This document shows, piece by piece, positions 2,559 through 49,700 of a DNA stretch of 64,000 nt. The position numbers and the translations under genes are program-made. The number at the start of each line of letters is the position of its first letter. The first letter of the stretch is position 1. The stretch comes from Oculina patagonica (Eukaryota): positions 20,336,001 through 20,400,000 of the forward strand of contig NC_135761.1 in assembly GCF_052425735.1 (NCBI RefSeq), read 5' to 3'. The notes under the pieces were generated by a model. It saw only the letters and a list, made by a program, of their open reading frames with translations, made no database searches and was not told the DNA's origin.

Positions 2559-3697
2559 TCAGTTGGATCCAAAATGCCAAACCTGTGCGATGGGGTCTAC
2601 TTGAGTCCCTCGTTTCCCTTTTGTCTGTAGTCATTTCAAAAGCATAAACGCATCCATTCAAACAAAAACCCTTTCGGTTGCTCATCTACTTATTCGAAGA
2701 AATTTCAGTGCTTCAAGTGCAATTCCCAAGTTGCAATACTAACAGTGTCGCGACAAACCATTGCAGTCACTCGACAATAACGGATATGAGACAATATTCT
2801 AATGAATGAACACACTCTTATCGTCATCTCAAGGTTGTAAGGTGGATCGCTACCCAGTTGGTGCCTGTAGTGAGGTCGGATCAAGTGAATTGGTCGTTTG
2901 CCAGAGGTTAAAAATATAGAAAATCTCAAACCATTGGACCTTAAAATGGCCGCGGTCGCATACGAGATGTGGTCACTCATGTAAGTCTCTGAATGCAGTG
3001 ATTTGACTGGAAAAATTTAATTAATTTTCGATCTTTACTTCCTTATATCTTTCAACAAAAAGAGGAGACTGTCCCCCGATCCCATTCCTAGATCCGTCCA
3101 TGAGTTGTGGAGGTTTCCTCCAAATTTCGTTGCCGTAGTTCTTGTGTTGTATCAGTATTGCGGATGTTAAAATTCACAAATCCATCTAATTATACGCAAA
3201 AGTGCAAGACCAAAGAAAGTACAAAAGCGTGTAAGCGGTTTTGTCTGTAACGGGTTACTGCTACTCGAGCCTTCTGAGCCACTGTTCTCAGTACTGTTGT
3301 GTCTATTGGTAATACTGGAGTAGAACAATTATGGAAGGATTTGCAAATCAATTAAGGGAGTAAAAGGGTGGTGCAGTTGTTGTTACTATACTTTTGATAT
3401 AACGTGGCACAGAATTCCAACCCTTTTATTACCCTTGTAACGCCTTTAAACAAATGTTTCAATATAATCTACTATCCTTGCTTTCTTTTGTTTTTCTATG
3501 AACAGTTTTTTTTTGCGGCCACCATATTGCTATTATTATTATTAATTTTCGGATTATTTATTTTATTTATTATATTCCACAAAAAACGACGAAGATAATC
3601 GCAAATATTGAGTCTGCCATAATTTTCTTATAGTAATAAAACAGTTGCAGTAGTATTGTTTTGCTCTTTTAGAGAACTGAAACGAATATGGAAGTGT

Positions 3698-6600
3698 TTA
3701 TGCTATGCCATAGCACTTTAGCTTTCCCAGTGTGTGATAACCTTCCTCGCCACTTGATACATCCCCAAACCTGAGCTGTTTAACTGGAAGATGTGTCTTG
3801 TCAGTGAGGAGACCGCTGTCCTCACGCCATACAGCGTCATTCTTATCACAGTTACAACCATACCTGGAGTCTGCACATGAGTTGTTCATCCCGCATGCGC
3901 ACTTACCACTACCAGGTGATGCTCCGCCCCAGTACGTCATCTTACTAGAGTCACGTGACACCCACCAGGCTGATCCGACTCTGAGCATCATTGAACTATA
4001 ACACTCGTACTTGATAAACTGCTCACAGTGTAAGGATACCCTGGTGAGACTCGCCAACTGAGGCAGACTCGCTCCAGTATAATGAATGTCACGCGAATAA
4101 CAACCGTGATCTTCACATCCGTCTACGTGCGTCCTGCTTTCACTGTCGTGATTTATTACTGTCACGCCAACTCCATTCTTGTCACTCATGTCACAATAAA
4201 CTGTAAATGGTGCCAGGCCTCCCGAGCCATCTGGACCAATGACGTAATTTCCGCTTACACTGCTGGCGTGTTTTCTTATCCCAGAACACGAAGTCGCAAT
4301 AACTGGGGAATTGATTTTGACCTTGGCTTCTATTATTGACAAAGCATTAGTCGCTCTACAGGTGTAAGATCCTTCGTGTGATTTCTTGATGTTCTGAATC
4401 AGCAGTGTTTCATTCTGTAGAACATTGGACTCTACAGGAAGTAGAGACTTACCATCCTTTGTCCAAGTGATTGTAGTTCTCAGGTCACTCTCGGCCACAC
4501 ACGGCAGATGGAGACTTAAACCAATCACAGGAGTCACCTCTTGAGGAGGACGGACTTTAAAACGCAAAGGAGGGAATACCGTTAGTTGAGCAGTGTCAGT
4601 TGCCGATCCCAGAATATTCTCTGCTTTACAAATGTATGTTCCACCGTCCTTTCTTGTCACACTGTTAATAGTCAACGTTCCATTCACCACTTTATTTCTG
4701 TCTTCAGGCAAACTACCTACTGACTTAGCCCACGCGACACTGGGAGGCGGCTGACCATAACCACTGCAGGCGATGGTAACGTTTTGTTTTTCTTCAGCAA
4801 TCAGCCGATTGGATGATAATAAAAGTTTAGGAGCGACTGTTGAAAAAAAGGAATTATTTTCCTTTGGCAAAACATACTACGTTTACAATTTACTGAATAA
4901 ATTTTAACCAACACCTACTTTATTGTAAAGTTCACTCCAGAATGGCCATTTATTTTCTTCACGCCAATAAAAAGTTAATACAAAGATATGTTATTCACAA
5001 AAATTTCAGCCTCCAACGTACGCTTTAACCCTACGAAATCTTTCCCAGAACTCAACAACTGAACACCGCCATCTTGGAGCTGGTAATGTATGCTTGACGT
5101 CAAAGAGCTCAGCATGAAGTTTGGCGGGAAAATTAAAATACTCGAAACTCCTTGTTTCTTCGTCTTTTGTTTCTCAAAATTCCTGTTTTGCAGCTCCATT
5201 CTGCTCAAACAGCTCCAAGAGCTACAAAAAACAAGGAGTTCTGACTATTAAATCTTTCCGCCAAAATTCAGGCTTAGCTCTTTGACGTCACGCATACAAT
5301 ACCAGCTTCAAGATGGCGGGGTTCAGTTATCGAGTTTTAGGAAAGATTTCGTAGGGTTATAGCAAACGTTAGAGGCTGACATTTTGGTGAATAACATGTC
5401 TTTGTGTAAACTTTTTATTGGCGTGAAGAAAATAAATGGCCATTTTGGAGTGAATCGAACTTCTCCTTTAACGTTGTTTCACATGTATATTTTGTTTAAT
5501 TACGTATACCTATTTATAACCTAGTCAAATTGTAGGCTACTTTCAGCACGTTTATTTCAATTTAAATGTCATGGGATAAATGCGGCCCGATATGAAAGGA
5601 ATTGGCATATTTCGCACCAACTCATAACAAAACCTTCCAGTGACCAAAAACCCTATCTTTACAGCGGACTTTTAGTAACACTGATCTAAATTATATAACT
5701 TACACTGGACAGTTAATTTCGCCGAGGCATTCACTTGTCCCAGCAAATTTTCCACTCTGCAGCTGTAAACTCCGTCGTCTCCAGGTCTAACGTCCTTCAC
5801 AATCAGTGCGCCACTGGACTCTACCACGTGACGTCCAACCGGCAGCGATGAATTCAGCTTAGACCACGTGACTTTTGGACTTGGATTACCATCCGCTGTA
5901 CATTTCAAGATGGCTGTCTGACTTTCATTGACTGTCGTTCCAACAGGACGCTGCAGCAGAGATGGAGCCGAGATGGACTGGCCCGGTTCACCTTTGACGC
6001 CTTTCATACCCGGTGGGCCTCTAGGTCCCACGGGACCGGGGTCTCCTGGTACTCCGATATCCCCCTTTATACCCATCGGTCCTTGAGCTCCTATTGGTCC
6101 ATGTTTACCGGGAGGTCCGTTTGATCCGGGTCTCCCTGGGGGACCTGACTTCCCTCGGGTTCCCAGTTTTCCTCGTCGTCCCGTGTTACCTTTTGGTCCC
6201 GTGCGACAGAGCGTGTGATCTTTAGCACAGACTTGGTTTTGCAGCAGACCAAATTCTTGTTTGACCAGTGCTTGTACTTCAGAGGCGGTAAGGGTTGATT
6301 TCTTTTGTGGATCATCCGTCGAAGAGCGTTTCTGTCTTGAGATGGTCGCCTGTTTACCTGTAAAATTATAGTTATTTGTTTATTAACGTACACTCTTTCA
6401 ACCATTCTTTGACGTTCAGCGGTTGGTATGATGCGACGTATTTCCGCTTTGATTTGTCAATGTGACTAACTGACTTAGATCCCAGCTCTCCTCTGGGAGA
6501 ATGCGGCCTCCGGAGGGGGGGGGGGGGTCGCATAACAAAGGGACGGGGATGCTCGTCGGAAATTTTGAAATGAACCTCTAAAAGAGACCAATCTGGTGTG

Positions 6601-19724: not shown

Positions 19725-19814
19725 TAGCCTGTTCCAGGCTCTCGGTAGTTTTTTTCCTCGCTTGCCCGCGTTTTTCGCTTTCCCTTTCAACTACCGAGAG
19801 CCTGGAACAGGCAA
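19725..19814. mobile_element. 90-bp hairpin MITE (hAT-like ends)
   Basis: tagcctgttccaggctctcggtagt / actaccgagagcctggaacaggcaa, with an imperfect ctgccatat/ctcccatat flank duplication. Absent at the paralogous site near 44905. Confidence 0.75.
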
Positions 19815-22719
19815 CTCCCATATAAACCTTTTGACAGTATTATTAAAGGGTCTCAAAGCGCAAGCGTGGTTGTGGAACGAAAAATCCGATGTCTCCATGT
19901 ACGAAAAAAAATTTCGAACAGGATTCCCTCTAATTCGTCGGTTTAAAAGAGTGAATAGAATATGTATGCACGTCCGTCGAAACAGTATGCTTGGAAGTGG
20001 ATTCGAACCCATTTTCCGTCGCACACTTAGATTCCTTGTGATTTTAGATCAAGCACGTATTCTGATCCACTTAAAGTAAAAACAGCTAGGGTCTATGTGT
20101 TCTCCTCACGTAAATAAATTTTCAGCGTGCTCATACGTCTTACCAGTGCCACACAAGAAATTAAAACGGTACAAGCCAATATAAAGGGTAAAATACATTG
20201 TGTAGCGTACAAGCGTCTTTGGTCAGTATAACAGCTTCATTAAATATACTTGGTAAAACACCAAAATGCAGGATTGTGATCGTATAAAATGTGTTCGTGG
20301 CGGCCATGTTGGAGAAGTGAAACAATAAAAGATATTTGTATAAAATGATTTTTTCCCAAAGGAAAATCAATCTATTGTTTCACTCCTCCAATATGGCCGT
20401 CATGAACGTACTCTACACACCAGTTTTTTCGAAGGTGTCACTTCACATTGCAATTATTTTTTACTTCATAGGCACTTAAACAAGGTAACTCCATCAGCTT
20501 TACAATTAAAACTATTATCGATAGATGCCCTGATAAAAAATAAAGAAATAAAATAATAAAAATAATGATAAAAATGAGACGTTTCGTAAGTGAGTCTCAT
20601 TGTAGTGAGGTTGCCATGACAGATCGTGTCCGTTGATGTATTTTGTTTAGCTCACCAATCCACCCAACCATGCGCCAAAGAGTACAAAAGCGTACTTCAC
20701 ATAACACCGTACTGCTATTAAATTAAACTGAAACTGTACAAGAAAAAGCGCCCAATATGTATTTTAGTTCTTTATTTCAAAATGCTTATTTTTTGCGATT
20801 ACATAATCTCGAAAAATGACTTTAATTTCGTGTTTTTGTAGAAAAATTATGCTAAAGGGAAGTAAGTACACGAAAAGTTTCCAACTAATTGCTGATCGAT
20901 ATAAAAAAGATAGTTTCAGAATCGGCGCTACAGATTCCAGTTTTACAAAGCAATTTTTATCCAAGCGATATTGAGCAAAACGATAACAAGACAAAACTAA
21001 AACAGGTTGGCATGTTCGTTTCCAACAAATCATGAAGTCGTACTAACGAGGTTAACGTTTATTAAGATATGTCTTTCCTCTGCTTCATGATATAACAATA
21101 ACTGAGGTACACTGTGATTGTTTACGAAGTTGTTATAAATTGCACATTTTTTTACTATGTGGCACAGAGTTTCTACCTTTTTTCGCTCTAATTATTAGGC
21201 ACAATTATTATCCTCGCTTGCTTCCATGCTTTTATGAACTATTTTTATTATTATCTTGCTTTCCTTATCATTATCTTCAGGTAATTGCAAAGTCACATTT
21301 ACATTTCAAACAAAACTGATTGTGATCATTGCAAATACTAAGTTTGGTGGTGATGTCAGTTCTTTTGAGAGTATCAAAAGGATACTCGAATTTTTATGCT
21401 ATGCCATGGCATTTAAGTTTTCCCAGGGTATGATAACCTTGCTCGCCGCTATCGCCTATATCGCCAAACCTGAGCTGTTTAACTGGAAGATGTGTCTTGT
21501 CATTGAGGAGACCGCTGTCTTCACGCCATACCTTGTCATTCTTATCACAGTTGCAACCATACCTGGAGTCTGCACATGAGTTGGTCATCCCGCATGCGCA
21601 CTTACCACTGCCAGGTGATGCTCCGCCCCAGTAATTCATCTTAGTAGAATCACGTGAGAACCACCAGGCGTGCCCATACAAGACAATCGTTGAAGCATGA
21701 CACTCGTACTTGATAAACTGTTCACAATGCGAGGAGACTCTTGTGAGACTCGCCAGCTGAGACAGACTCGATCCAGTGTAGTGTATGTCACGCCAGTAAC
21801 AACCATCAGGGTTACATCCCCGCACGTGTGTTCTGCTCTCACTGTCATGACTTATTACTGTCACGCCAACTCCATTCTTGTCACTCATGTCACAGTAAAC
21901 TGAAAATGGTGCCAGGCCTCCCGAGCCATCTGGATCAATGACGTAATTTTGGCTTTCACTGGTGGCGTATTTTCTGATCACAGAACAAGAAGTCGCAACA
22001 ACCGGGGAATTGATTTTGACTTTGATCCCTCGTGTGATTTCTTGATGTTCTGAATAAGCACCGTTCCATTCTGTAGAACTTTGGACTCTACAGGAAGTGA
22101 AGTCTTGCCATCCTTTGACCAAATTACTGTGGGTCTCAGGTCGCTCTCGGCCACACACGGTAAGCGAATTGCATGTCCAATCACAGGAGTCACCTCTTGA
22201 GGAGGACGGACTTTAAAATGCAGACGAGAAAATATTACCAGTTGAGCAGTGTCTGTTACTGATCCCAGAATATTCTCAGCTTTACAAATGTATAGTCCAC
22301 CATCCTTTCTTGTCACACTGTAGATTGTCAGCGTTCCATTCATCACTTCTGATCTGTCTTCATTTTTACCCCCCGCTCTGGACCACGTGATCCTGGGAAG
22401 CGGCTGACCAGCAGCCGTGCAGCTGATTGTAAAGTTTTGTTTTTCTTCGGCAATCAATCGATTGGATGATAATAGAAGTGTAGGAGCGACTGTCGAGGAA
22501 CAAAAAAAAGAATTTTATTCTTTGGGAAAACATATGGCGAATGTACTTTACAGAACAAGAACATTGAGAAGCTTGAGAAGCTTAAAATCGGGCGCTTTGC
22601 CTTGAAAGGCAGGGTTCAGTACAGCAGAAACCACGAAGCAGTTACTTAAGTAGCACTCAGTCCGACTGTGTTTGTGTAAGTCACAGGGCTTGCATGAGCT
22701 GTATTAGTGTGCATAATAT

Positions 22720-41657: not shown

Positions 41658-44364
41658 CTATGCTATGCCATAGCACTTTAGTTTTCCCAGCGTGTGGTAA
41701 CCTTGCTCGTCATTTTCACCTATATCTCCAAACCTGAGCTGTTTAACTGGAAGATGTGTCTTGTCAGAGAGGAGACCGCTGTCTTCACGCCATACATCGT
41801 CATTGTTATCACAGTTACAATTACGACCATTTACACATGAGTTGGTCATCCCGCATGCGCACTTACCACTTCCAGGTGATGCTCCGCCCCAGTATTTCAT
41901 CTTAGTAGAGTCACGTGACACCCACCAGGCATGGTCAGGTTCGTACCTGAATATCGCTGATGCATAGCACTCGTACTTGATAAACTGTTCACAGTGTGAG
42001 GAGACTCTGGTAAGACTCGTTAGCTGGGACAAACTTGTTCCTGTGTAATGAATATCACGTGAATAACAACCAGAATCTTCGCATCCATGCACGTGCATTC
42101 TGCTCTCACTGTCGTGACTTATCACTGTCACGCCAACTCCGTTCTTGTCACTCATATCACAGTAAACTGTAAATGGTGCCAAGCCTCCTTCGCCATCCGG
42201 ATCAATGACGTAATTTCCACTTACAGTGCTGACGTGTTTTCTGATCACAGAACACGAAGGCGCAACCACTTTGACTTTGACTTTGGCTTCTATTGTTGAC
42301 AGAGCATTGGTTGCTTTGCAGGTGTAAGATCCTTCAAGTGATTTCTTGATGTTATGAATCAGCAATGTTTGATTTTGTAGAACATTGGACTCTACAGGAA
42401 GTGAAGACTTACCATCCTTTGTCCAAGTGATTGTAGTTCTCAGGTCACTCTCGGCCACACATGGCAGGTGAACACTAAGTCCAATCAAAGGAGTCACCTC
42501 TTGAGGAGGACGGACTTTGAACCGCAGAGGTGGAAATACCACGACTAGAGCAGTGTCTGTTGCTAATCCAAGAATATTCTCCGCTTTACAAATATATAGT
42601 CCACCGTCCTTTCTTGTCACACTGTTGATTGTCAGAGTTCCATTCACCACATCAGTTCTGTCCTTAGGCAAACTACCCCCTGCTCTAGACCACGTGATAC
42701 TGGGAAGCGGCTGACCAGTAGCACTGCAGGCAATGCGGACGTTCTGTTTCTCCTCAGCAATCAATCGGTTGGATGACAATAATAGTTTGGGAGCGACTAT
42801 CGAGAAAAAAAGGAGAAATATATATTTTCATGGGGTGAAACAATGGCGAATGCACCTTACTGGATGAATTTTTATGCAATATTTCCTTTATATACAATTT
42901 ATAAATCTTTTTATGCTTGTTAAATTATAGCCGGTCATGTGCAGGTTCTTTCAGATTTAAATTTTATGGGATGAAGCAACACCTGATAAGAAAGATTTTT
43001 CTCTTAAATACGATTTCATAGTTTGGATGAAAGTACTTCTGAAGTTGCGTTATCTTTTCATATTTCGTATCAGCTAAAACAACGACTTTTACACCAAAAA
43101 GACCTATCTTTACACTACAAAGAGCTTCTTTTCCAGCATCATCCACAACTTCTCGCCAATAAATATCTAAATTATGTGAAAACTTACACTGGACAGTTAA
43201 TTTCGCCGAGGCGTTCACTTGTCCCAGCAAATTTTCAGCTTTGCAGCTGTAATCTCCTTCGTCTCCAGGTCTAACGTTCTTCACAATCAGAGCACCACTG
43301 GACTCTACCACGTGACGACCTACAGGTAGCCGTGAGTTGTACCTTGACCAAGTAACTTTTGGTGTTGGATTACCATCCGGTGTACATTTTAAGATGACTG
43401 TCTGGCTTTCATTGACTGTCATTCCAACTGGGCGCTGCAACAGAGATGGAGCCGAGATGGACTGTCCTGGCTCCCCCTTGTTACCTTTCATACCCGGCGG
43501 GCCTCTAGGTCCCACGGGACCTGGATCGCCAGGCACTCCGAAATCCCCCTTTATGCCCATCGGTCCTTGAGCTCCTATTGGTCCATGTTTACCGGGAGGT
43601 CCGTTTGACCCTGGTCTCCCTGGGGGACCTGGTCTCCCTCGGGTTCCCGGTTTTCCTCGTCGTCCCGTGTTACCTTTTGGTCCTGTGCGGCAGAGCGTGT
43701 GATCTTTGGCACAAACTTGGTTTTGCAACAGACCAAGTTCTTGTTTTATCAGTACTTGTACTTCAGAGGCGGTAAGGGTTGATTTATGTTGTGAATCATC
43801 GGGCGAAGAGCGTTTCTGTCTTGAGATGGTCTCCTGTTCACCTGTAAATTTTAAATAATTTGTTTTACATCGTACACTGTCTGTGAACCATTCTTTGACA
43901 TTCAGCGGTTGAAATGATGCAACCTATTTCCGCTTTTATTTGTCAATAAATGGACTAAAATCATAGCTCTTTTCTGTGAGAATAGGGCATAATACTCTTT
44001 TTAATTATTGTATCTATTCGTGTGAGGAAAACCATTCCGCTAAAAACATGTTCCTGTGTGAAAATCTTAAAAATCTCAGTAACGTAACTATTAACATACC
44101 TTTCGTCGCTTGCCAATGGCGGCCTGTAACCATAGCATGCCATCTTTTGTAATTTTGTTGTACTTTTCGAAGGATTCCGGGCTCCATCTTATCACAGAAT
44201 GTTACTGAGTGTGATATCAGTCGATGATGTTCTTGTATTCTGAGTTCCACGTGAATAAGCGCGATACAACACACAACAGACATCAGCAAACCTGACGCGG
44301 AACACAAGCGGTGCAGTGTTTGCCTTCTGTTCATCTGCTTCGTTTCTTTATCTTGGTGTTTCAT
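41658..44364 (-). CDS. Copy 6 of the CniFL-like gene, 685 aa; exons 44100-44364, 43188-43841, 41658-42796
   Basis: Conserved splice sites. The exon 3 product differs from copy 3 at only 4 residues. Confidence 0.9.
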
Positions 44365-45339
44365 CGTCGCAACTGTCACTGCGATCTTGCGATGTCAAAT
44401 TGATGTAAGTTGCGTTTTGTTCACTCTTTGAGTTGCTTACAGATAAGTCCGCTGTGAGTTTAATCGATCAGTGAAAGGACGATGTCAAATTGATGATCCG
44501 ATTTTCACTGAAACTCGCAAATGTAACATTAAACTTAATGTTAACCGATACGGTGTAAAAATAGAAGCATTTGTCTGTGCTCGTTATGACGATTCAGTAT
44601 CACAGGAAGTAGGTTAACTTCTTACTGAGGTTACATTTATTTACCACACACATTGACCACAGCGTCTGAGCTGAAGCTGGTTGGTGCACGTGTTTAGGGA
44701 GGGGAGGGTAAATATTGTCGGTTGGAAAGTTATAAGTTTAGAAGATTTCATATGCAACAATTGTAGAAAGCTACATGGTTACTTCAGTAATTGATCATTG
44801 CGGGCTGAATATTTGATAAAATAACTTATTTGAAACTTTGTGGCCCATCCTTCGTCTTGTGCTGAGCAATATTCTTCTGACAATTCAAATGAACTTTCAT
44901 CTCCCATATATACCTTTTGACAGTATTATTTAAGGATCTCAAAGCGCAAGCGTGGTTGTGGACAGAAAAATCCGATGTCCCCATGTACGAAAAAAAAAAT
45001 TCGAACAGGATTCCCTCTAATTCGTCGGTTTAAAAGATCGAGTGACTTGAAATTGATGTATGCATGTCCGTCGAAACAGTATGCTTGAAAGTGGATTTGA
45101 ACCTATTTTCAGCCGCGCACTTAGATTTCTTGTGATTCTAGATCAAGCACGTATTCTGACCCACTTAAAGCAAAAACAGGGTCTATGTGTTCTCCTCACG
45201 TAAATGAATTTTCAGCGTGCTAATACGTCTTACCAGTGCCACACAAGAAATTAAAACGGTACAAGCCAATATAAAGGGTAAAATGCATTGGACTAGCGGG
45301 ACTTCGAACGCGATGTTCGACGAGTTAGCTTCACCGAAA

Positions 45340-45386
45340 GGTCTCTGATAAGTCTCTTGGCGGAGACGAAACATGCGTGTCAGACC
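45340..45386 (+). ncRNA. Type I hammerhead ribozyme, copy with G8>A core mutation
   Basis: GGUCU-CUGAUAA-GUCUC(UUGGCG)GAGAC-GAA-ACAUGCGUGU-C-AGACC. Confidence 0.7.
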
Positions 45387-45522
45387 AGCCACGAAAGTAT
45401 TCATTAACAATTTACACGTTACGCAATTGGGAATGCTTACGCGATGTAAGGCCAGATTGCACCATCATTTCGACGCTAGCGGGACTTCGAACGCGATGTT
45501 CAACGAGTTAGCTTCACCGAAA

Positions 45523-45569
45523 GGTCTCTGATGAGTCTCTTGGCGGAGACGAAACATGCGTGTCAGACC
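45523..45569 (+). ncRNA. Type I hammerhead ribozyme, intact core, predicted cleavage after GUC at C45564
   Basis: Stem I GGUCU/AGACC, CUGAUGA, stem II GUCUC/GAGAC, GAAA, near-palindromic stem III ACAUGCGUGU, and a GUC site. Confidence 0.88.
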
Positions 45570-46747
45570 AGCCACGAAAGTACTCTAAATATACTTGGTA
45601 AAACACCAAAAATGCAGGATTGTGATTGTATAAAGTGTGTTTGTGGCGGCCATGTTGGAGAAGTGACACAATAAAAGATATTTGCATAAAAATGAATTTT
45701 TTTCCCAAAGGAAAATCTATCTATTGTTTCACTCCTCCAATATGGCCGTCATGAACGTACTCTATACACCAGTTTTTTCGAAGGTGTCACTTCACATTGC
45801 AATTAGTTTTTACTTCATAGGCACTTTAACAAGGTAACTCCATCAGCTTTACAATTAAAACTATTATCGATAGATTCCCTGATAAAAAAACAAAGAAATA
45901 AAAAAATAAAAATAATAATAAAAATGCCGTTTCGTAAGTGAGCCTCATTGTAGTGAGGTTGCCATGGCAGATCGTGTCCGTTGATGTATTTTGTTTAGCT
46001 CACCAATCCACCCATGCCCAACCATGCGCAAAAGAGTACAAAAGCGTACTTCACATAACACCGTACTGCTATTAAATTAAACTGAAACTGTAGAAGAAAA
46101 AGCGCCCCATATGTATTTTAGTTCTTTATTTCGTAATGCTTATTTTCTGCGATTACATAATCTCGAAAAAAGGACTTTAATTTCGTGTTTTTGTAGAAAT
46201 ATAATGCTAAAGGGAAGTAAGTTCACGAAAAGGTTCCAACTAATTGCTGATCGGTATAAAAAAGATAGTTTCAGACATGGCGCTACAGATTCCAGTTTTA
46301 CAAAGCAATTCTTTACCAAGCGATATTGAGCAAAACGATAACAAGACAAAACTAAAACAGGTTGGCATGTTCGTTTCCAACAAAGCATAAAGTTGTACTG
46401 ACGAGGTTAACGTTTATTAAGATATGCCTTTCCTCTGCTTCATGATAAAACAATAACTGAGGTACACTGTGATTGTTTACGAAGCTGTTATAAATTGCAC
46501 ATTTTTTTACTATGTGGCACAGAGTTTCTACCTTTTTCGCTCTAATTATCAGGCACCATTATTATCCCCGCTTGCTTCCATGCTTTTATGAACTATGTTT
46601 ATTATTGTCTTGCTTTGCTTATCATTATCTTCAGGTAATTGCAAAGTCACATTTACATTTCAAACAAAACTGATTGTGATCATTGCAAATACTAAGTTTG
46701 GTGGTGATGTCAGCTATTTTGAGAGTATCAAAAGGATACTCGAATGT

Positions 46748-49700
46748 TTATGCTATGCCATAGCATTTAAGTTTTCCCAGGGTATGGTAACCTTGCTCGC
46801 CACTATCCCCTGTATCGCCAAACCTGAGCTGTTTAACTGGAAGATGTGTCTTGTCAGTGAGCAGACCGCTGTCCTCACGCCATACACCGTCATTTGCATC
46901 ACAGTTACAAGCCGGATAACTGGGGTTTGCACATGAGTTGGTCATCCCGCATGCGCACTTACCACTGCCAGGTGATGCTCCGCCCCAGTAATTCATCTTA
47001 GTAGAATCACGTGACACCCACCAGGCATATTGTAACGTTGAATCAAAGCACTCGTACTTAATAAACTGTTCACAGTGTGAGGAGACTCCGGTGAGACTTG
47101 CCAACTGAGACAGGCTTGCTCCTGTGTAGTGAATGTCACGTGAGTAACAACCTTGAGATTCACATCCCCGCACGTGTGTTCTGCTCTCACTGTCGTGACT
47201 TATTACTGTCACGCCAACTCCACTCTTGTCATTCATGTCACAGTAAACTGAAAATGGTGCTAGGCCTCCTGCGCCATCTGGATCAATGACGCAAGTTTCG
47301 CTTACACTGGTGGTGTATTTTCTGATCACAGAACAAGAAGTCGCAATAACTGGAGAATTGATTTTGACTTTGGCTTCTATTGTTGACAGAGCATTAGTTG
47401 CTTTACAGGTGTAAGATCCCTCGTGTGATTTCTTGATGTTCTGAATAAGCACCGTTCCATTCTGTAGAACTTTGGACTCTACAGGAAGTGAAGTCTTGCC
47501 ATCCTTTGACCAAATTACTGTGGGTCTCAGGTCGCTCTCGGCCACACACGGTAAGCGAATTGCATGTCCAAACACAGGAGTCACCTCTTGAGGAGGACGG
47601 ACTTTAAAATGCAGACGAGAAAATATTACCAGTTGAGCAGTGTCTGTTACTGATCCCAGAATATTCTCTGCTTTACAAATGTATAGTCCACCATCCTTTC
47701 TTGCCACACTGTTGATTGTCAGGGTTCCATTCATCACTTCTGATCTGTCTTCATTTTTACCCCCTGCTCTGGACCACGTGATCCTGGGAAGCGGCTGACC
47801 AGCAGCAGTGCAGGCGATGGTAACGTTTTGTTTTTCTTCGGCAATCACTCGATTGGATGATAATAGAAGTGTAGGAGCGACTGTTGAGAAAAAAAAAAAT
47901 AATTTTATTCTTTGAGAAAACAGCTGGCGAATGCACTTTACTAAATAAGGTTTTATTCTAACACATGCATAGGTTATTAGGAAAGATTTTATAAATGTTA
48001 TTTTCCTTTTAAATTCTATCTCATTAATCTCATTATACTCGTTAAATTGTAGCCTATCTTGAGCAGGTTCGTTTTGATTAAAAAAAAACCCTCTTCCGAA
48101 AAGAAAAATATCTTTCTGTAAAACGACTTAATTAATATTTTGGATTATTTATCAAGTGCTTGTGCAATTTCTTTTTGCGATGTTTCGCACCAGCTCTAAC
48201 AAGACCCTCGACTGACCTTTATAGCAAAACAAAAAACATCTTAACGATACGTACGATAGGTCTGTTTTTCAGCATCAACCACAGTTACTAAATATCTCAA
48301 TTATTACACAACTTACACTGTACAGTTAATTTCGCCGAGGCGTTCACTTGTCCCAGCAAATTTTCAGCTTTGCAGCTGTAAACTCCGTCGTCTCCAGGTC
48401 TAACGTCCTTGACAATCAAAGCGCCACTGGCTTCTACCACGTGACGACCCACAGGAAGTGATGAATTGATTTTCGACCACGTGACTTTTGGAGTTGGATT
48501 ACCATCCGCTGTACATTTTAAGATGCCCGTCTGACTTTCATTGACTGTTGTTCCAACAGGACGCTGCAGCAGAGATGGAGCCGAGATGGACCTGCCCGGT
48601 TCACCCCTGTCGCCTTTTATACCCGGCGGGCCTCTAAGTCCCATGGGACCGGGCTCTCCCGCCACTCCGACATCCCCCTTTATGCCCATCGGTCCTCGAG
48701 GACCTATTGGTCCATGTTTACCGGGAGGTCCGTTTGACCCGGGTCTCCCTGGAGGACCTGGTCTCCCTCTAGGTCCCGGTCTTCCTCGTCTTCCCGTGTT
48801 ACCTTTTGGTCCTGGGCGGCAGAGCGTGTGATCTTTAGCACAGACTTGGTTTTGCAGCAGACCAAATTCGTGTTGAATCAGCAGTCGAACTTCAGAGGCC
48901 GTTAGGGTTGATTTCTTTTGTGAATCATCGGGTGAAGAGCGTTTTTGTCTTGTGATGGTCTCCTCTTTACCTGGAAATTTAAAGCGTTTATAATATGGCT
49001 GAATCCACGTGCAAGAAATATATCTTATTAACCACGCGCGAGGGCCGTACTGGGCGAATATTGGCCCGAGGTCTTGACAGTACGGATCGAGCGCAGCGAG
49101 GTCCGTACAAAAAGACCGAGGGCCAATAAACGCCCAGTACGGTCCCGAGCAAGCTTGGTTAATAAGAGATTTATTACACGACTGGAAACTTTGGGTAGTG
49201 AGAATTGCTACCCGGTAGATGTTGTGGAAAAAAAATGTGCGGCAAAACTTTTTCGCACGCTAAAAGAGTTATAATTATTTCTGTGGTTAGTTCATTTCAT
49301 TTTCAAAGCAATGAAAACTTCGAAAAACTCTTGCAAAAAAATCTAGCAAAAATCTTGTGCTAAATCGCGCGGGAATTAGCGCGGGATCATCCGGGACAAA
49401 ACCCGGTCCGATACTTGGAAAATATCGGCCCTCGCGGGACCGGAAATAAAGTAATCTGATTGGCTGATTTAGTTATTGGCCCTCGGACCGCCTTAGTCGT
49501 GTAATAAGTGCCCGTATTGCCCGTTCGGGATTTCCCGGGTCCGTCCCACCAAAAAATTTTGTTTTTTGGCCATATAATAAATCCTTTATTGACCAAGCTT
49601 GTTGGTCAAGATGGCTTTATGTTGGCCTCGTTCCTTTTTCTGCTTTTATTGACTTCGACTTCGCGTCAGACCATAAAACACAAAAAAGCATTTGGCCAAT

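Follow-up and report, generated by a model that had tools for sequence, protein, structure and literature searches.

Hammerhead ribozymes in tandem 183-nt units of Oculina patagonica and the insertion scars of a probable retrozyme family

We analysed a stretch of 64,000 nucleotides (nt) from the genome of Oculina patagonica (contig NC_135761.1, positions 20,336,001 to 20,400,000 of the forward strand; G000:C4:20336001-20400000 in our coordinates). This whole stretch is referred to below as the window, and positions given without a contig are those of the window. With a probability of about 85% in our estimate, the segment 45293-45585 is a 5′-truncated insertion of 1.6 units of a non-autonomous retrozyme family lacking long terminal repeats (non-LTR retrozyme), which has spread through RNA cut by its own hammerhead ribozyme. 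Retrozymes are already known in animals, and the 183-nt family described here joins them. The locus itself is an ordinary and probably inert transposon copy. More can be learned from the family, which is small and young and has been sampled almost completely, so that its insertion junctions are readable at single-base resolution. These junctions give sequence-level support for two steps that are usually assumed, namely a cut made in vivo before reverse transcription and an internal start of copying.

Two type I hammerheads in a 183-nt direct repeat

The insertion contains a direct repeat, 45293-45402 and 45476-45585, whose arms are 110 nt each, 97% identical and offset from start to start by 183 nt. 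Each arm carries one type I hammerhead on the forward strand, HH1 at 45340-45386 and HH2 at 45523-45569. HH2 has the three-helix type I layout, with helix I open and helices II and III closed. Its helix I is GGUCU/AGACC (5 bp), its core opens with CUGAUGA, and its helix II is GUCUC-UUGGCG-GAGAC (5 bp with a 6-nt loop); then come GAAA, the self-complementary decamer ACAUGCGUGU and C17 at 45564, 3′ of which the cut is predicted. When both motifs were compared with the conserved core (C3 U4 G5 A6 N7 G8 A9, G12 A13 A14, A15.1-U16.1, H17), all nucleotides were present in HH2, whereas HH1 fails at G8: an A in its place at 45350 (CUGAUAA) is the sole difference between the two hammerhead sequences. 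G8 is needed for hammerhead catalysis, while position 7 is free. HH1, with its nominal cleavage site at C45381, is predicted to be inactive. In published experiments, G8 mutants abolish cleavage (PMC11167929).

A structural descriptor that asked for the core together with minimum lengths of 4 bp for helices I and II and 3 bp for helix III matched the HH2 site alone in the 64-kb window and gave 0 matches in 200 Markov controls. The original prediction, made from the letters of this stretch, had placed two type I hammerheads in a 183-bp direct repeat, the second with a perfect core and the first with G8>A; both statements are confirmed. It had also described stem III as a near-palindrome able to act through dimeric folds, and this holds as well: the 10-nt stem is self-complementary with two G-U pairs and can form either 3 bp closed by a UGCG loop or a 10-bp intermolecular duplex of -12.5 kcal/mol, in agreement with what has been reported for the minimal, dimeric hammerheads of Penelope-like elements (PMC4209133).

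With those hammerheads our motif shares a 5-bp helix I, a weak palindromic helix III and the G10.1-C11.1 pair, and dimer action would be expected in tandem transcripts as it is for them; it departs from them in helix III, which has 3 bp and a 4-nt loop here versus 0-1 bp there (PMC4209133). Newt satellite 2, Schistosoma Sm-alpha and cave-cricket pDo500 are likewise tandem repeats or resemble short interspersed elements (SINEs), and they carry type I hammerheads with a weak helix III. Their sequences, however, are unrelated to ours, and no RNA polymerase III (Pol III) head was found here. Literature and supplement searches returned no relevant match to the hammerhead sequence.

A dispersed family and its insertion scars

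The original prediction called the insert retrozyme-like and named dispersed tandem copies elsewhere in the genome as a check. A search of the species' own 529-Mb assembly gave at least 101 matches to the 293-mer and at least 136 matches to the 37-nt hammerhead with no more than 3 mismatches, 41 of them perfect (reversed-pattern control, 0). Long arrays of ~14-20 units lie on contigs C2, C3 and C5 and shorter ones on C14 and C6, the range across the family being 2 to ~20 units, and ~50 short insertions are dispersed over 14 chromosome-scale contigs. Together with the target-site duplications, constant 3′ end and 5′ truncation described below, these copies support the retrozyme-like character. 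Most of them are 95-99% identical, and they fall into two subfamilies, U7 with units of 183/184 nt and A7 with units of 181 nt. G+C content of the unit is 49.2%, with 17 CpG. The 183-nt unit holds no open reading frame (ORF), there being stops in all six frames, and no endless ORF runs through tandem units. No tRNA-like part was found in the unit by ARAGORN or by Rfam, where tRNA models gave no match at E up to 10, and there is no poly(A) at the family 3′ ends. Neither a Pol III head nor bacterial-type promoters or terminators were found, a promoter scan of the latter kind not being meaningful for a eukaryote.

These features were compared with those of known retrozymes. In animals, type I hammerheads within tandem repeats of 150-450 bp define retrozymes, which are accompanied by target-site duplications of more than 4 bp and by circular RNAs (PMC7229834). 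Our family resembles the metazoan non-LTR retrozymes of coral, mussel and axolotl in its type I hammerhead, its short tandem unit, the absence of ORF, LTR, primer-binding site and polypurine tract, a G+C content just below 50%, dispersed multimers, duplications of more than 4 bp, the co-occurrence of Penelope-like elements and its abundance in transcriptome-like data. It is unlike them in three respects: the 183-nt unit is short compared with 220-245 nt in the described coral family and 350-390 nt in mussel, the hammerhead is without an extended helix I or a loop 1 for tertiary contacts (PMC7229834), and the predicted monomer is not highly self-paired.

Variation among the copies is distributed unevenly. 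Long arrays contain many decayed cores, for example with G12>A at a CpG or with G5>A, as is expected of neutral decay after insertion, and dispersed copies vary mostly at tolerated sites (N7, loop II, C17U). A divergent copy (L063) is 76% identical overall, yet has kept 41 of 41 hammerhead positions, making the ribozyme the most conserved part between subfamilies. Such conservation would be expected if propagation were limited to lineages whose hammerhead still works.

Junctions could be oriented at 52 loci, of which 3 sharing flanks were removed, leaving 49 independent insertions. Unit position 1 was set at the A just 3′ of the hammerhead GUC cleavage site. The 3′ ends of all insertions lie within AGACCAGCCACGAAAG(UAUU), at unit positions ~15-26, and most show microhomology with the target. 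The 5′ ends are spread over the unit, with a sharp excess at the cleavage site: 10 of the 49 are exactly at position 1, and 13 (27%) are at positions 1-3, where 0.8 would be expected (binomial p 9e-13). Copies starting at the cleavage site consist of 1, 2, 3 or 5 units plus the 3′ tail (n = 9, 2, 1 and 1, respectively). Adjacent target-site duplications of 9-13 nt (mean 11, 76% A+T) were present in 16/49 insertions, while permuted pairings of the flanks gave 0.66 on average and 3 at most. Target sites tend towards S|WWWTTT, a motif that is only suggestive.

A fixed 3′ end combined with variable 5′ truncation is the signature of target-primed reverse transcription, and we infer from the insertion scars that the family is target-primed. 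The excess of 5′ ends at a scissile bond that had been predicted independently indicates that the copied RNA was already processed by the hammerhead. The insertion 5′ ends thus appear to be a genomic footprint of self-cleavage in vivo, which is shown indirectly in this way. The template would be either a linear RNA with a ribozyme-made 5′ end or a religated circle that stops the enzyme at its junction; DNA alone fits both. Five further insertions (L008, L015, L036, L047 and L055; 5/49) start at unit positions 172-176, 8-12 nt upstream of the cleavage site (p ~0.01); a switch of template to the 3′ end of another cleaved RNA may account for them.

The scars resemble the published insertion behaviour of Penelope-like elements (PMC11167929, PMC8557442) in having a 3′ end within the unit past the hammerhead, where an A/C-rich stretch makes up the 'tail', as well as in AT-rich targets, partial tandems and 5′ truncation. 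Two differences stand beside these likenesses. Copying would start 15-20 nt past the cleavage site here, as opposed to ~85-92 nt in the Anolis Penelope-like element. Also, 27% of insertions begin at the cleavage site here, whereas uncleaved RNA was the main substrate in vitro in the published system and no reads ended there (PMC11167929).

Part of this pattern is shared with other retroelements. Variable 5′ truncation, a constant 3′ end and ~11-bp duplications are generic to target-primed reverse transcription and leave the enzyme unspecified, so they would also suit a SINE-like hammerhead element of the Schistosoma Sm-alpha kind, with an internal Pol III promoter and moved by a long interspersed element (LINE) instead of a Penelope-like element; a TTCGAA core in the unit is even faintly like a B box. 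Several features speak against such an element. Our element has no tRNA-like match, no Rfam match besides the hammerhead and no poly(A) or simple-repeat tail, the inserts are multimeric, and the 3′ end falls within the tandem unit at 15-26 nt beyond the cleavage site, matching the 'tail' signature that has been described as exclusive to Penelope-like elements (PMC11167929). We therefore consider a SINE-like origin unlikely.

The same junctions bear on whether an RNA intermediate is needed at all. Ordinary satellite DNA with a relic hammerhead could spread by unequal crossing-over and segmental duplication, and the long C2, C3 and C5 arrays with their many decayed cores (G12>A, G5>A) probably did grow by amplification at the DNA level. 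Yet the flanks of the 49 dispersed insertions are unrelated to one another, target-site duplications greatly exceed the permuted control, all insertions have a common 3′ end, 5′ ends accumulate at the site of ribozyme cleavage, and an empty paralogous site exists for the window copy. The satellite explanation is contradicted by these scars, and we give it hardly any credence.

One locus on the contig of the window (L051, G000:C4:16383000-16391000) has an unusual arrangement. At 2838-3213 and 4269-4644 of this locus, a retrozyme copy is split by an element of ~180 nt that has terminal inverted repeats and a target duplication of 10 bp (AGATTGCACC). A 1277-nt block is duplicated here with 100% identity, 1431 nt apart, and adjoins a Gypsy-type pol ORF (RVT_1, RNase H, integrase) on the other strand. 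The locus was considered as a larger element with two hammerheads 1431 nt apart, and this was rejected: it is one copy split by an insert resembling a miniature inverted-repeat transposable element (MITE), with the block duplicated afterwards.

Transcriptome-like data, candidate mobilisers and a possible life cycle

The family sequence is present in 20 public runs, none of which is on record as RNA; 15 were guessed to be RNA, and 5 are without an assigned kind. Four probable RNA runs, coming from four studies and carrying three organism labels, were mapped. Across 45293-45585, the contigs of these runs reach summed word depths in the hundreds to thousands, and the unique flanks (44900-45269 and 45899-46000) have depth 0. 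A whole-genome DNA run reaching such depth on ~250 units would cover the flanks; the runs thus behave like transcriptomes, in which the family would be abundant. At position 45350, all contigs from runs X1 and X4 have G, as does the family consensus, so that the sequenced material comes from copies other than the one in the window. Several contigs exit the element at 45582-45584 into unrelated sequence, marking the common 3′ end.

Penelope-like elements have been proposed as mobilisers of animal retrozymes (PMC7229834), and vertebrate retrozymes are related to the pseudo-LTRs of these elements (10.64898/2026.07.22.740005). For one Penelope-like element, the reverse transcriptase has been shown to initiate at an internal AC-rich stem-loop, located 3′ of the hammerhead, and to nick DNA that is AT-rich (PMC11167929). 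The role of the hammerhead in Penelope-type retrotransposition is still called unclear (PMC8557442, PMC11167929). The genome analysed here holds at least 860 candidates for the GIY-YIG domain (PF01541), and all 150 that were scored pass the Pfam cut-off; many are in head-to-head pairs, an arrangement typical of Penelope-like elements. One Penelope-like family of eight loci (L071-L078, e.g. G000:C7:6716934-6722779), often in head-to-head pairs, has a minimal hammerhead (GCUC-CUGAAGA...GAAACGUA|GAGC) ~350 nt 3′ of the GIY-YIG domain. Copies of this family terminate at two or more distances from their own cleavage site, either 37 nt or ~50-95 nt past it, which is the 'tail' pattern.

Given that Penelope-like pseudo-LTRs carry hammerheads, that most such insertions are 5′-truncated and that the elements abound in this genome, the window copy could in principle be a 5′-truncated solo pseudo-LTR fragment of an autonomous Penelope-like element. 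Upstream of the units, however, the sequence cycles into the 183-nt unit (in arrays of up to ~20) and never into an ORF, and the 183-nt family, unlike Penelope-like elements, has no protein-coding part. None of its ~55 loci is within 200 kb of the 150 listed GIY-YIG matches (of at least 860 candidates), and the Penelope-like loci that were inspected share no sequence with the unit. A pseudo-LTR fragment is therefore very unlikely in our view. A non-autonomous retrozyme borrowing a Penelope-like enzyme is suggested instead, by the likeness of its scars to published behaviour and by the abundance of such elements in the genome. These two points favour the Penelope-like mobilisation put forward in the original prediction; the partner element that it would call for was not found among the 12 GIY-YIG loci inspected.

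Two observations on other elements were made in the course of this comparison. A GIY-YIG-encoding element with an open frame of 1371 aa is present in at least 10 copies, at L079-L082 and at least six further places (e.g. G000:C3:1323294-1323515). The four copies compared (L079-L082) are 99.96-100% identical with a sharp common 3′ end, and the other places have the same frame and score; no hammerhead was seen in this element, which from its sequence looks very recently active. Secondly, a different hammerhead family (CCAUG-CUGAUGAG-...-CGAAAC-AGCU-GUC|CAUGG) lies near position 1119 of L076 and L078, just outside a truncated Penelope-like copy, and has GCCAC a few bases past helix I, as in the 183-nt family.

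Several points weigh against a retrozyme family that spreads through hammerhead-cut RNA. The mapped runs are RNA only by guess, and neither the ends nor the strand of an RNA, nor a circle, can be read from contigs. Hammerhead cleavage is indicated here indirectly, by genomic insertion scars. The Rfam check named in the original prediction fell short of the cut-off: a scan at gathering level gave no match in the element, and a permissive scan placed Hammerhead_1 (RF00163) at 45524-45568 with a sub-threshold 19.6 bits (gathering score 34; E=0.049 over 501 nt searched), the model mis-registering the 5-bp helix I of HH2. The canonical hammerhead fold (-8.6 kcal/mol) is weaker than a competing 7-bp hairpin (-11.6 kcal/mol). 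The monomer has a minimum free energy of -44.0 kcal/mol when linear and -38.4 kcal/mol when circular (z +0.6 and +0.7, respectively, against dinucleotide shuffles) and so, in contrast to most published retrozyme circles, is not highly self-paired. The window copy has no target-site duplication. Finally, comparison of unit, hammerhead and tail with the 12 GIY-YIG loci gave only 7-14-nt chance matches.

A viroid-like rod structure, considered separately, was rejected because shuffled sequences fold at least as well as the monomer. The competing hairpin exists because GUCUCU occurs twice in the hammerhead (45523-45551), one occurrence comprising the 5′ strand of helix I together with C3, the other the 5′ strand of helix II; judging by these folding models, it could serve as an on/off switch of the ribozyme. 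One genomic copy (L061) has an 11-nt slippage duplication at this GUCUCU repeat.

In the mechanism that we propose, tandem copies would be transcribed into multimeric RNA, and the hammerheads, with a weak 3-bp stem III that can be extended to a 10-bp intermolecular helix, would probably act as dimers and cut 3′ of GUC. At a staggered break in AT-rich DNA, copying by a reverse transcriptase would begin at an internal site, 15-20 nt downstream of a cleavage site, and continue to the 5′ end made by cleavage upstream, or halt sooner. The products would be inserts of 17 + n x 183 nt, or truncated ones, between duplications of ~11 bp. By analogy with published retrozymes, the 183-nt monomer would be expected to be circularised by a host ligase. 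It is conceivable, although we put this forward tentatively and would not rely on it, that the scars are a fossil record of this life cycle as a whole: a cleaved multimeric linear RNA or a circle as the template, a Penelope-like internal start and run-off at the ribozyme-made 5′-OH. If this were true, ribozyme cleavage would set the 5′ boundary of new copies, giving the hammerhead a concrete role in Penelope-type retrotransposition. Such a role in Penelope-type retroelements becomes testable with the 183-nt RNA and candidate Penelope-like proteins from the same genome.

The window copy and its neighbourhood

On the forward strand, the insertion at 45293-45585 runs through unit coordinates 95-183, then 1-183, then 1 to ~21. 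It includes a single complete 183-nt unit from cleavage site to cleavage site (45382-45564), which is non-coding with stops in six frames, followed at 45565-45585 by the 3′ 'tail' (AGACCAGCCACGAAAG...), the constant 3′ terminus across family insertions and the presumed start of reverse transcription. Compared with the family consensus, the copy has 4 differences in 293 nt (98.6% identical), G8>A among them. Because HH1 is without G8, a transcript of the window copy would be cuttable only at C45564, releasing no unit-length RNA or circle; as read from its sequence, the copy is probably inert as a source of unit-length RNA.

The original prediction also stated that the insert is missing from a paralogous spacer near 20.2 kb and that it probably post-dates the duplication of the block. 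The flanks of the insert align to this spacer at 90.7% (44898-45290 versus 19812-20200) and 92.6% (45586-47098 versus 20241-21750), and the empty site is found at 20193-20240, likewise on the forward strand: 48 nt there correspond to 10 nt plus the 293-nt insert in the 45-kb copy. As the paralogous spacer has an empty site, the insertion is younger than the block duplication, and both statements hold. The few differences from the consensus likewise suggest that the copy is young. Within the empty site, 20208-20240 (~33 nt) is without a counterpart at the filled site. At the 5′ junction (45283-45298, forward strand), the target ATGCATTGGA is followed by the start of the element, which opens with (C)TAGCG and shares TAGCG with the empty site; this overlap indicates that the 5′ join was probably microhomology-mediated. 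The copy would thus have landed in the spacer between two minus-strand genes for proteins with collagen repeats and immunoglobulin (Ig) domains after the block had been duplicated, removing ~33 nt of the target.

The window copy is intergenic. One minus-strand collagen/Ig-domain gene (ORF 46748-47848) has its stop ~1.16 kb from the insert, which lies downstream of this stop and upstream of the next collagen/Ig gene copy, on the opposite strand.

Directly 3′ of the retrozyme, at 45627-45767 (paralogue, 20282-20419), there is a palindromic MITE-like element of ~140 nt, which aligns with its paralogue in either orientation. Contigs of the probable RNA runs cover this element too. The tandem paralogous genes on the minus strand (41658-43728 and 46748-48689) encode collagen repeats, Ig domains and a cysteine-rich C-terminal domain, the latter giving no Pfam match in the ORFs tested. 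The entire window is a tandem array of such collagen/Ig gene blocks.

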